From assembly GCA_021613535.1 (NCBI GenBank), contig CP075497.1, positions 6,014,001 through 6,078,000 of the forward strand: a DNA stretch of 64,000 bases, read 5' to 3'. Numbering within the stretch: the first letter of the stretch is position 1; the number at the start of each line of letters is the position of its first letter. The notes beneath the pieces were generated by a model, which made no database searches, was not told where the DNA came from, and saw only the letters and a list, made by a program, of their open reading frames with translations. The translations under genes and the position numbers were made by a program. The DNA is from Adineta vaga (Eukaryota > Animalia > Rotifera). This document shows positions 52,044-56,708 of this stretch, in pieces.

Positions 52044-53047
52044 AGCTGTAAATCAGCAGGCGGTGCTATTTATTTTTTCTGAAAAAAGAAAAGACAAGAA
52101 TTTTGATCGACAACAATGTGAAAAGCAGAGCTCAATAATTATAATGATAGTCAACAACAAACAACAACTGGACTCGAGAAGCAAGAAAGAAAGAAAGAAA
52201 GAAAGAGAATAGAAGAAAAAGAGAGAAATGCAGAAAAAGCCTTTCTTTTCTACCTTGATGTGCTTCAATGAGGATGTTTTAATTTTGTTGCTGTCTCTCC
52301 TTCTCTCTATCGTCCTCTATGTCGTTTTCTCTGTCTTTCTCGCTTCTGTTTCTCCCCCACCTCCGCTCTCTCTCTCTCTCTCACTCTCACTCTCTTCCTC
52401 TGCTCTTGCTGGCCGATCGACAGTAAGCAAAGGTTCTGTCGTGCATCTATATATCGTATGGCCAACTTGTAGAAAAAGTACTTCAGAAAAAGGCAAAGAA
52501 AAAATAGAGACAACGAATTATACAATGCATAAAAGGCGAGAAGAGGACGCGTCACACGTCAGCAAGCATCATGATGATGATAATGATGATATTTGCTGAC
52601 TATCAACGATACACTCATAAATGAAACCATGACTTCACCATTTTTATATGTCAGGAAAAGCGAAACAACATGTATTGACATGTGTAAGAATGTGTAATCG
52701 ATGCATGTATAACGACGTCTCTACTTCTATAAAATAAATCAGTACAAGGTTAGAAAATGAAGAGAAAAAAAAGAATCCAAAAGAGATACATTGCAAAAAA
52801 AGAGTGGATGACGCGCAGAAGCGTGGGCATATACAATATTTCTTTAACGCTTCGATGCACTTTTATTACAAGAATGTTTATGCAGCAAATGTATATGTAT
52901 TGATATGAAGCTACAAAAAACGAAAACGGAATTGATGTCTTGTAATATATTGGGAAAACTTAGCAATAATAATATGACAAAAATTCTTTTATTTTAAGAG
53001 AAAAAGAAATCAATAAAGACATATGTGTGTGTATAGATCAATGAAAG

Positions 53048-55098
53048 TTAACTTTTAACACGATTGTTTGTTTGCGGTTTTTTTACAGCTTGCACCGGTT
53101 TACGAACACTACTTTTGACAGTACTACCACGAACAATACGATTTGCTTGAGCTGGTCGACGAGTCGTAGCTAATGTTCGACGTGTTGTTGAACGACGTTT
53201 GCCGGGCATAGCGGTTTGTCGTCCTCGTTGTTTTACAGCTTGTTGATTTCGGAGAGGAAAGTTGTTGTTGTAGAACATTGCATCACTACCAGGAAAGACT
53301 ACACCAGGATAGTTATTCACACCATTGCCTATAAAAATCGATCGAATGATTGTAAAACTAAATTTATCTCATACAGTTTCCACTATATCCATTACCGTTA
53401 CCGTTATTGACATTGTTGATACCATTACCAGTTGTAGCACTGTTTACATTTGCGCCTGCATTACCATTACCATTGCTGTTTGTATTTGTGTTCGCATTTG
53501 GATTTGCATTAGCATTTGTATTAGGTAAGGTGTTCACATTCGTATTGGAAACTCCATTTCCATTGGCATTCGTATTAGGAACTCCATTTCCATTGGCATT
53601 CGTATTAGGAACTCCATTTCCATTAGCATTTGTATTTATAGGAGCATTGACATTAGTATTTCCATTAGCATAACCATTGTTGTTAGTGTTAGGAAAGGTG
53701 TTTGTATTTGTGTTAGGAACACCGTTTCCATTGGCATTAATAAAAGTGTTTGTATTCGTGTTAGGAACACCATTTCCATTAATATTACTATTAGTATTGA
53801 CGTTCGTGTTAGGAAAACTGTTAATATTGGTATTACCATTGACATTGGTATTAGGATAAATATTGCCATTGCTATTGGTATAGACTAGAAATCAATATGT
53901 TCGGTTTTTATTTTAGATTCAAATAAGAAAAAGTTCATTATATAGATAAATGTATATTGATAGAAAATGCACTGATTTTTATCATAATATTTACCTCCAT
54001 TATTTACATTATTTGTTGGATAGGAACCTATATAAAGATTTTAAATAACGGTTCTACAAATTTTCAAAAGACACATTTACCCGCATTTTGATTGTTAAAT
54101 GGAACAGCGTCTGAAACGGAAGAAAATGGTTATAAATTCTAAGAATATAATATATACTAATATCTTTTACTTGTTGAAAGTTGATTTATAATACCAGTAT
54201 AGTAATCATCTATGAAAATACTTATATGTATCATTCATTGCTGATCATAGTTTCAAAAAAATGAGCTACCTTCAGGATTTTCTGTGTTTGATGGACCAAA
54301 AGTCTCTATTGTGTTTTAAAGATAATAATTGTAACAAATGATTAGATTAAAAGTTACTACGCGACATACCTATAAAATAAATTTTGAGAAAAGCAAAGTT
54401 TGTATTAAGAACAAACTTTCATTAACTTACCGTATGTTTCCTCAAAAGGAACTGTTGTTGAACTTTCAGTAATTGCAGCTAATTCATATGAAAAGAAAAT
54501 CATTTCAATTATCAAACAAGAATCAAGTTGACCTACGGGTAGTTGTCGATGATGCTGTGTCTTCAAACAAAAAAGCAAAAATTCATATAGAAAAATAAAA
54601 GTGATAGAAGTTAAACTTACTTGTAGTATTAGTTGGTGCAGCATGAAAAATAGCACAACATGGATAACAAGCAAATACGGATAAAGCTTCTGCAACTCGT
54701 GTAGCCATGGAATCATAAACAGCACACATAGCTGATGCTGATGGTGGCATACATCGTGGACAAATTTGTCTTAAGCATGAGACCATTTCTTGATTACAAA
54801 CTTCTCGTGAAAACATGCATGAACTGAAACACATGCGATGAAGACATGTACATTCTTGATATTGTTGAGAATAACATCGAAGTGCAGCAAATGAACGTCC
54901 ATGTCGTTCCCAAAATGGACATGTTCCACCAGAACAAGATTTTTTTCCACGAACGGTACGTAAATAAGCATAAGCAGATTTTGGTGCTGGTGCTTTAGTT
55001 GTATTTCGTCCTGATGTGACAATCAGACGACGACGGGTCGTAGCTGAATTGACCAGCACAATAGTAAAACATAGTAAAACTACTAAACTCAATCGCAT
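53048..55098 (-). CDS. Secreted protein: inactive group-XII-like PLA2 domain + microexon-encoded stalk + Asn-rich repeat + basic tail
   Basis: Ten exons, all joined in phase 1 with GT-AG sites and no stop codon: 55098-54621, 54560-54537, 54478-54431, 54369-54361, 54305-54270, 54209-54195, 54110-54081, 54027-53995, 53884-53375 and 53328-53048. Signal peptide MRLSLVVLLCFTIVLVNS. Confidence 0.8.
53380..53880 (-). repeat. Coding tandem repeat (30-bp unit, NANGNGVPNT) within an Asn-rich exon
   Basis: Three near-perfect 30-bp copies at ~53538-53630 (cattcgtattaggaactccatttccattgg) plus degenerate copies on both sides. Confidence 0.9.
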
Positions 55099-55982
55099 AT
55101 TTGCACTAAGATTCCTTGGTGTAGTTTAGTGAAATGGGATAGAGAGTAATCAAATCCAAAATGTCGCTCTACTTACATTTATAGACACCGTTTATATGTT
55201 GATGAGTCGAAGCTCTTCTCTCTCTCTCTGTCTTTTTTCTCTCTATCTTATTAGGATTAAATACGTGTACGTGAAAGAATGTGGTTTTGAGTGTATATTC
55301 ACGACATAATGACAAACATTTGAAAAAAAAACTACAACTAAATCATCACCTTGACTTTCAGTGATCAACTCATAATGGATATGATCAAAGTTTATTACAT
55401 ACGTCTAGAATTATTCACTAAACAAGTTAAGATGTTTTATTTCCGTTAACCTTGGAGTTTTGAAACTTTTCGTATTCAAACGTGTTCATTTTTTTCAATC
55501 GAAAGAAGAAAAAGAAAAGAAAAGACGTGTTCCAACTTTATCTTTTAAGTAAAAGGTCGTTGTCTAGTATAGTTTATTGTCATTAAAAGTTCTAATAGTA
55601 AAACAAGAAAGAAACAAACGAGACCAAGACATATATCGAAATGAGAAAATGTATGACAAGAGTTAAGCCGAATAATCGATACTCAATAACAATAACAAGA
55701 ACATCCTTGCACATATCGAGAAAAAAAAACTATCATCAATTATTATCGAAAGGTCTTCTCCAGATCACTTTTTCAAATCGAAACAATTCGATGTGTACTG
55801 CAAATACGTTATGCTACTAAAATCTCACCAATCGTTTATCAATATACTGAATGATCTATGTATGCAAGATGACAAATGATTTCAAAACAATACATGTCGA
55901 AAACTTTCGGATACATTTTGTTGTATACTCTAGGTTATTTATTGAAGAACTAACAAGTATCAAAAAATATTTTTTTAAAAGT

Positions 55983-56708
55983 TTACACAAATCGCCATTG
56001 TTGACCAAGATCAGCATGATCACGTCTAGCTAAAGTTACATGTGTTGTTTCCTGATCAGTAACTTGTAAAAACATATAGTCCATCTGATTCATTACTTTT
56101 GCTACAGTTCGAATTCGAAAATAATCCTTTTCACCTGTTGGAATAATATCCCAAAGTTGTGTTTTATCATTATTAAAATCTTGTGTTTCAACATCGATCG
56201 ATTTATCTTTTCCAATGACACTCAGAACTTTTCCACTAGGTTGAGTGATTAATTTAAATTGATGCTGATCATTTTGTTCAATATTCATTGCAATTTGAAA
56301 GGTTTCATGTAAACGATTAACTGCACTATAGCGACGAGTTGGATGGAAATTTAATTGTTTACCTAGAAGATTTTCAAAATAATTCGTTTATGAGATGAAA
56401 TAACGAGAACATACGTAAAACAGCATCACGACATGATTTTAAACATTCTTCACTTGTTTGAAATCTATTATGATTACCCATTAAACCACCATAGACAAAT
56501 TTGTTACATGTCTTATTACGAGCATCCCATGCATATACTTCAAAGTATGCACGACCTGGACCAGGATCAGCTCGTTCAAAACAATCAAAATCAGCAATAT
56601 CTATATAAAATTCAATGCTATTCTTATTCATTCAATTCAGTACTTACTTGAGTATACACTCGATAATCCTAGACATGAAATCAATATGACGAATACGACT
56701 GATACCAT
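55983..56708 (-). CDS. Secreted Kunitz/BPTI domain (4-Cys) + ricin-B/beta-trefoil-like domain; 3' end uncertain (possible extra exon to ~55880)
   Basis: Signal MVSVVFVILISCLGLSSVYT; Kunitz CFERADPGPGRAY...CNKFVYGGLMGNHNRFQTSEECLKSC; then SGKVLSV...TQLWDI and FLQV...GQQWRF (QxW motifs). Confidence 0.8.

Follow-up and report, generated by a model that had tools for sequence, protein, structure and literature searches.

Snake-venom phospholipase A2 (PLA2) proteins are sorted by residue 49, which is Asp, Lys, Arg, or Ser (PMC6382788), and promutoxin (R49) and TM-N49 (N49) are 'devoid of catalytic activity' (PMC3591241), yet biologically active. Among the group XII secreted PLA2 (sPLA2) proteins, PLA2G12B is a catalytically inactive member whose conserved calcium motif is needed for lipoprotein expansion (PMC10920679), and otoconin-90 contains two sPLA2-like domains without catalytic activity (PMC3105080). 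Here, we describe a gene of the bdelloid rotifer Adineta vaga that lies on the minus strand at 53048-55098 of a 64,000-nucleotide (nt) stretch of contig CP075497.1 (assembly GCA_021613535.1, positions 6,014,001 to 6,078,000; hereafter the window, from whose first letter all positions are counted). A sequence-only reading had taken positions 54660-54945, which correspond to residues 52-147 of the encoded protein, for a catalytically dead group XII-like sPLA2 fold at the head of an Asn-rich extracellular protein. The best overall explanation of our results, and one that we consider probable, is an expressed secreted protein in which a PLA2G12-derived and probably non-catalytic binding head is tethered to a polycationic tail.

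As a reference set for the head, we used A. vaga's own canonical PF06951 (group XII sPLA2) paralogs, which comprise at least seven loci above threshold among 11 candidates in the 100.8-Mb, six-contig genome assembly. Their core reads GCGP ... CCNxHDxCYxTCG ... CDxxF..CL...C, with 10 Cys. Database, family, and fold searches were made exon by exon; the joined 485-residue model was used for composition and isoelectric point (pI). A profile built from the head family (57 homologs, described below) aligned to the PLA2G12 paralogs in hhalign with a probability of 89% and an E-value of 2e-6, and with signal peptides removed the score was 34.8 (E 1e-5, 57 columns). Composition-preserving shuffles of the target columns (n = 150) had a mean score of 12.5 and a maximum of 25.1, shuffles of the query columns (n = 150) had a maximum of 18.8, and the reversed target scored 11; none of the 300 shuffles reached the observed score. 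A 17-sequence PLA2G12 alignment gave the same register, with a score of 36.5. In this register, His87 corresponds to the catalytic His, Arg88 to the Ca2+-ligand Asp, Phe/Tyr91 to the Tyr, Asn102 to the dyad Asp, and Met105 to the Phe, and Cys83, Cys90, Cys94, Cys101, Cys108, and Cys113 all fall on paralog Cys. The head family scored 12.5 (probability 0.3%) against the six PF00068-type sPLA2s of the A. vaga genome, which is background; as a yardstick, PLA2G12 scored 30.2 over 16 columns against the same sequences. The group III family, PF05826, had no match in the A. vaga genome.

Other searches pointed the same way. When the members were scanned one by one against Pfam, PF06951 was the most frequent family (5 of the 57, below threshold, best E 8e-4). 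A protein search of the A. vaga genome returned, after the ohnolog of the gene, PLA2G12 paralog L005 as the next match (E 0.36). The top neighbour of residues 40-152 in a language-model search was a PLA2G12 cluster (0.91, 185 shared features); among the neighbours listed, every named one carries a PLA2 family. These results indicate a remote homology to PLA2G12 that is supported by several lines of evidence, partly independent of each other, and in our view a diverged PLA2G12 fold is highly probable for the head. On this point the sequence-only reading is supported by the profile alignment and its shuffles, the specificity for PLA2G12, the sub-threshold PF06951 matches, and the language-model and structural neighbours. 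Its claim of a gap-free alignment to the group XII core holds for the Cys spacing and the His, which hhalign reproduces against the PF06951 paralogs, but not for the second Cys of the CC pair; the Cys of the C-terminal 'LGCxPY' that it had included is absent from the rotifer PLA2G12 paralogs.

An AlphaFold2 model predicted from the 57-sequence alignment had a mean predicted local distance difference test score (pLDDT) of 74, rising to 82-95 for residues 71-140, with helices at residues 61-72, 74-93 (containing His87), 98-116 (containing Asn102), and 119-139. A shape search of the Atlas with this model led to a 'group XIIB secretory phospholipase A2-like' cluster, 99% of which is PF06951, with template-modelling (TM) scores of 0.43 for the query and 0.38 for the target over 104 aligned residues. 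In one structural ranking, 1faz, 4aup, and 8k1w took ranks 3-5. As a control, the model of a canonical A. vaga PLA2G12 had 4aup as its best match in the PDB. Foldseek against the PDB found nothing at E<=0.001, with 1faz and 4aup at ranks 10 and 24.

That Foldseek result is one of several that weigh against assigning the head to group XII. Pfam returned zero families for the protein of this gene at E<=10, and the curated PF06951 cut-off (34 bits) was not reached; neither phmmer nor the family profile had a match among all PDB sequences; and the locus was not among the 11 candidates of the genome-wide PF06951 search. In addition, the second Cys of the CC pair (position 84) is Thr, Val, or Ile in this family, with a new Cys two residues later, and the head has at least five extra Cys (15 compared with 10 in the rotifer PLA2G12 paralogs), which implies a rewired disulfide map. 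These observations would suit an unrelated, bdelloid-born Cys-rich helical domain with a convergent or chance likeness to PLA2G12. We consider such an origin quite unlikely, because none of the shuffles attained the observed score, the match is specific to PLA2G12 and absent for other Cys-rich sPLA2s, PF06951 is the top Pfam family among the members, the language-model and shape searches each name PLA2G12, and the canonical paralog has the same PDB chain, 4aup, at the top.

The head belongs to a family that we detected in bdelloids only. A protein search with exon 1 yielded 57 homologs at 48-86% identity, and phmmer with the same query over 1.84 billion cluster representatives gave just 13 matches, all close relatives. 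The profile of the 57 homologs, run against 5.8 billion proteins, recovered ~70 proteins, all of them bdelloid, and no bridge sequence linking the family to PLA2G12. Members come from Adineta vaga, A. steineri, A. ricciae, Rotaria magnacalcarata, R. socialis, Rotaria sp., and Didymodactylos carnosus; every one is called 'hypothetical' or 'unnamed' in the databases, and no Pfam domain is precomputed for any of them. The search for homologs, one of the checks proposed with the sequence-only reading, produced relatives within bdelloids alone, with HD in 0/57 and the dyad Asp in 6/57. Literature searches on bdelloids with phospholipase A2 and on adhesive proteins of the rotifer pedal gland found nothing relevant.

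The family is under constraint. The 57-member alignment has 27 invariant columns, among them 13 Cys, His87, a CPFW..GRSF block, Glu104, and Met105, and the head contains 15 Cys in 53 of the 57 members. This odd number implies that one Cys is unpaired and could form an intermolecular disulfide. The A. vaga ohnolog on contig 3 (I4U23_013895, 313 amino acids) is 71% identical, and dN/dS between the two A. vaga heads is 0.23, showing purifying selection. Three variants of the RNA-derived contigs that fall inside the head, at 54775, 54799, and 54943, are all at third positions and synonymous. The ohnolog gene spans ~1.4 kb and keeps the head and the last part of the basic tail, but its middle is far shorter (313 amino acids in all, compared with 485), which shows that the spacer changes rapidly even between copies in the same genome. 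One A. steineri protein (P0058, 399 amino acids) has the head-plus-repeat unit twice, with the first copy truncated; a tandem duplication or an error in joining the gene model may explain this.

We established the gene structure from assembled RNA contigs of four runs in two studies, placed on positions 52900-55300. In the four runs of both studies, contig joints read on the plus strand ended in CT..AC, corresponding to GT..AG introns of a minus-strand gene. A single 896-nt RNA-derived contig comprises exon 1, six microexons, and the Asn-rich exon, and other contigs join the Asn-rich exon to the last exon. The resulting model has nine exons and encodes a 485-residue protein; its internal exons are all of phase 1, with lengths that are multiples of three. 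Because spliced RNA-derived contigs of two studies join exon 1 to the downstream exons, both the gene and the arrangement that had been read from the DNA, with a head, a microexon stalk, an Asn-rich region, and a basic tail, are real.

Exon 1 (54621-55098, minus strand like all features of the gene given here) is 478 nt long and encodes residues 1-159 plus one nucleotide (phase 1), comprising the signal peptide, a short Thr/Arg linker, and the PLA2G12-like head. It lies in a 171-codon open reading frame at 54583-55098, with the ATG at 55098-55096, and this frame contains the Cys-rich peptide on which the sequence-only reading was based, with the core CxCLHRMC...CN...CLxxIC. A GTAAGT donor directly adjoins the end of the coding part at 54621, and the joint 54560/54621 is present in contigs of three runs. 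An RNA-derived contig spanning 54984-55155 places at least 55099-55155 in the 5' untranslated region. The signal peptide occupies about residues 1-19 (55042-55098) by inspection; the hydrophobic N-terminus is kept in the 57 homologs and forms a lone helix, residues 3-18, in the model. Based on the hhalign alignment to the A. vaga PF06951 paralogs and on the AlphaFold2 model, the group XII sPLA2-like helical domain extends over residues 40-152 (54643-54981) and has 15 Cys. Within it, the codons read from the sequence for His87, Arg88, and Asn102 are at 54838-54840, 54835-54837, and 54793-54795, respectively.

The stalk described in the sequence-only reading is a real, RNA-spliced cassette at 53995-54560, but it is made of six microexons (24, 48, 36, 39, 30, and 33 nt) and not seven. 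Microexon 2 (54537-54560, 24 nt) is defined by the joints 54560/54621 and 54478/54537 and by AG/GT splice sites. RNA joints and splice sites likewise define microexons 3 (54431-54478, 48 nt), 4 (54270-54305, 36 nt), 5 (54171-54209, 39 nt), 6 (54081-54110, 30 nt, with the cut moved by +2 to give canonical ends), and 7 (53995-54027, 33 nt). The pieces of the 896-nt contig that could be placed are separated by 138 nt, a length matched exactly by 36 + 39 + 30 + 33, so that no further microexon is hidden there. Microexons of 9 and 15 nt, which had been proposed earlier, were rejected, as the length of this contig leaves no room for them.

The Asn-rich exon (53396-53884, 489 nt, residues 230-392) is bounded by the joints 53884/53995 and 53327/53395. 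The last coding exon (53048-53328, residues 393-485, stop codon 53050-53048) was placed by its splice sites, and the end of the tail is kept in the ohnolog and in the longer homologs P0047, P0060, and P0061. At least 52900-53047 belongs to the 3' untranslated region, as judged from an RNA-derived contig at 52900-53327 that extends past the examined stretch. Two donors 6 nt apart end the Asn-rich exon (53395 and 53401; GTAATG and GTAACG), giving a 73-nt intron from the upstream donor at 53401 in one run and a 67-nt intron in three. Within this exon, 48 nt (53725-53772) are missing from all RNA-derived contigs of both studies. An intron at this place was rejected, since its ends are non-canonical (TT..CA), with eight ambiguous bases, and it lies between two 48-nt direct repeats; the gap reflects either a different number of repeat copies in the assembly and in the sequenced cultures or a collapse of the repeat by the assembler.

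The protein consists of a signal peptide (residues 1-19), a Thr/Arg-rich linker, the Cys-rich head (about residues 40-152), a stalk (153-229), the Asn-rich region (230-392), and the tail (393-485). The stalk is acidic and rich in Thr, Ser, and Pro, with exons 2-7 together encoding residues 160-229. The 163 residues of the Asn-rich exon are 41% Asn and have a strict two-residue period, with 46-51 Asn-Asn pairs at even lags (2, 4, 6, and so on; 48 at lag 2) compared with 2-5 at odd lags (4 at lag 1). No N-x-S/T sequon occurs in this exon, where 11.1 ± 2.4 are expected from composition. It is conceivable that the region forms an (Asn-x)n beta-face or polar zipper. Homologs of other species do not conserve the Asn-rich form of the region at 53396-53884, a Pfam search of the Asn-rich and tail exons returned no family, and the Atlas neighbours of the Asn-rich exon included none that was informative (best score 0.78). 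The tail follows a conserved GVFPGS-type motif, is rich in Arg, Lys, and Thr, and contains 20 Arg or Lys in 93 residues; the computed pI is 9.2 for the head and 12 for the tail. Longer homologs have a common plan, in which the head is followed by a low-complexity spacer whose length and composition vary greatly from one species to another, by a GVFPG(S/A) motif, and by an Arg/Lys/Thr-rich tail. Taken together, the tail and spacer suggest a tethered extracellular protein that would be bound to a surface or matrix. The sequence-only reading had proposed that it could be a cuticle, eggshell, trophi, or adhesive protein.

A basic head with a very basic tail could also belong to a membrane-perturbing secreted effector in defence, antimicrobial action, or feeding, in which, as in K49/R49 myotoxins, a non-catalytic PLA2 scaffold would dock on membranes and leave the disruption of anionic bilayers to a cationic C-terminal segment. 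The head shares the Asp-to-Arg change with the R49 venom homologs (PMC3591241), and the product of the neighbouring gene is a secreted protein that combines Kunitz and ricin-B lectin domains. The Arg/Lys/Thr-rich tail, however, has few hydrophobic residues and is hence non-amphipathic, and the ~240-residue mucin-like and Asn-rich spacer between head and tail, which varies widely among species, fits a matrix protein or tether better than a compact toxin. An effector of this kind therefore seems rather improbable to us. The neighbouring gene lies at 55983-56700 on the minus strand; in its small protein product, a Kunitz/BPTI domain (E 2.5e-16) precedes a ricin-B-type lectin domain (E 5.6e-8).

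To return to the reading of a non-catalytic binding head, the family-wide columns bear directly on catalysis. Position 87 is His in 57/57 members. Position 88, that of the Ca2+ ligand, is Arg in 56 and Gln in one, with no Asp; the Asp that follows the His is invariant in 17 PLA2G12 sequences. At position 102, the dyad residue is Asn in 51 members and Asp in six, and position 91 is Phe in 42 and Tyr in 15. The substitutions of HR for HD and CN for CD that had been noted in the single gene are real, and HR is fixed across the bdelloids. In a low-confidence segment of the alignment, the GCG calcium loop, invariant in PLA2G12, corresponds to S-C-(S/A/T) and then GG-x-CPFW. Judged from these columns, the calcium site is consistently dismantled while the His is retained. 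Selection still acts on the former active site and its surroundings, as the strict conservation of His87, Arg88, Glu104, and Met105 shows. Such conservation fits a ligand-binding pocket, and a metal-independent activity is conceivable. By analogy, Ca2+-dependent phospholipid hydrolysis has likely been lost, since the R49/N49 venom PLA2s, PLA2G12B, and otoconin-90 are inactive precedents. Because the protein stays below the profile threshold and lacks HD, CD, and a recognizable GCG loop, it is better placed in a bdelloid-specific family derived from PLA2G12 than in PF06951 itself. Altered active sites are also found at some A. vaga PF06951 loci, with HY for HD in L006 and CN for CD in L005, and one PF06951 domain (L009) forms the C-terminus of a 530-codon open frame.

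The same conservation has another side: the invariant His87, Glu104, and Met105, together with the Asp at the dyad position in six members, also fit a functional and possibly catalytic site. The head could still have lipase, phospholipase, or acyl-hydrolase activity that relies on His87 and not on Ca2+, with Arg88 stabilizing an oxyanion or phosphate and Asn/Asp102 orienting the His, as might be argued from the absence of free drift at Arg88, from the restriction of position 102 to Asn or Asp, from the low dN/dS, and from the dyad Asn of the otherwise canonical paralog L005, in which HD is kept. The catalytic His is, however, conserved in inactive K49/R49 homologs as well. All sPLA2s with Arg, Lys, Asn, or Ser at residue 49 that are characterized in the literature we searched are reported to lack catalysis (PMC3591241, PMC6382788), and the GCG calcium loop is unrecognizable here, so that we regard a surviving enzyme as very unlikely.

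Under the explanation that we prefer, a non-catalytic head tethered to a polycationic tail, the head would be a bdelloid-specific branch of the group XII sPLA2 family that has diverged strongly, keeping the His while the Ca2+-ligand Asp became fixed as Arg. It probably works as a binding module locked by disulfides, whose most plausible ligand is lipid or some other anionic molecule, with the guanidinium of Arg88 occupying the place of Ca2+. The fast-evolving low-complexity spacer, here a mucin-like microexon stalk and an (Asn-x)n region, would tether the head to the tail, and the conserved polycationic tail could anchor the head to polyanionic surfaces or matrix. We infer ligand binding and a role in the extracellular matrix or in secretion. 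A more specific proposal, which we hold to be unlikely, is that an Arg-for-Ca2+, metal-independent clamp for anionic lipid or phosphate, a sequon-free and possibly Asn-faced beta (Asn-x)n segment, and the polycationic tail together make up a bdelloid-specific extracellular material, such as a foot adhesive, an egg coat, or a desiccation-protective gel, perhaps cross-linked through the unpaired fifteenth Cys.

At present, our results amount to a well-supported annotation and not to a discovery. The kind of protein is not new, because pseudo-enzymes of the sPLA2 superfamily are well known (PLA2G12B, the R49/K49 homologs, and otoconin-90). The new elements are the family itself, its independent route from Asp to Arg inside group XII, and the attachment of a spacer and a polycationic tail. 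With this analysis, an unannotated family that has no Pfam model and is conserved across the sampled bdelloid genera is assigned a fold and an evolutionary origin. It also adds an independent invertebrate case in which a secreted PLA2 has become a probable pseudo-enzyme, by the same route as the R49 venom homologs but in another sPLA2 group. If the head binds lipid, or if the protein builds extracellular material, the family would provide a handle on bdelloid-specific secretions.

Compared with known systems, the protein is closest to the group XII sPLA2s (PF06951; PLA2G12A and at least seven A. vaga paralogs), with which it shares secretion and a single-exon domain and appears to share a long C-terminal helix and a gap-free alignment of the His helix and the next helix, with the pattern C-x3-H-x2-C-x3-C-x6-C-x6-C-x4-C. 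Unlike them, it has HR for HD and CN for CD, lacks a recognizable GCG loop, scores below the Pfam threshold, has lost the second Cys of the CC pair and gained at least five Cys (15 in all), and carries ~330 residues of low-complexity and basic sequence. The group XIV microbial all-helical PLA2s, represented by 1faz (Streptomyces), 4aup (Tuber), and 8k1w (Saccharothrix), differ from the head by an identity of 6-14%, by having two disulfides, and by an active HD site. Otoconin-90 resembles it in placing non-catalytic sPLA2-like domains within an extracellular matrix protein (PMC3105080), but its two such domains are of group I/II type, with 31-35% identity, and the matrix in which it acts is a vertebrate biomineral one, whereas nothing in the A. 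vaga protein points to mineral. In the R49/K49/N49 viperid venom homologs, such as promutoxin, the Ca2+-ligand Asp next to the His is likewise replaced by a basic residue (PMC3591241, PMC6382788); those proteins are of group II (PF00068), against which type the head profile scores 12.5, and are compact, with ~120 residues and without a spacer or tail, and the likeness of the head to the R49 homologs is convergent. PLA2G12B has the group XII fold, has lost phospholipase activity, and acts in a non-enzymatic, lipid-related role (PMC10920679), and the Atlas shape match of the head is 'group XIIB-like'. PLA2G12B nevertheless keeps an essential calcium-binding motif and is retained in the endoplasmic reticulum (ER) (PMC10920679), whereas the A. 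vaga protein has a destroyed calcium site, a retained His, and no ER-retention signal; relative to PLA2G12B, its probable loss of function is independent and lineage-specific.

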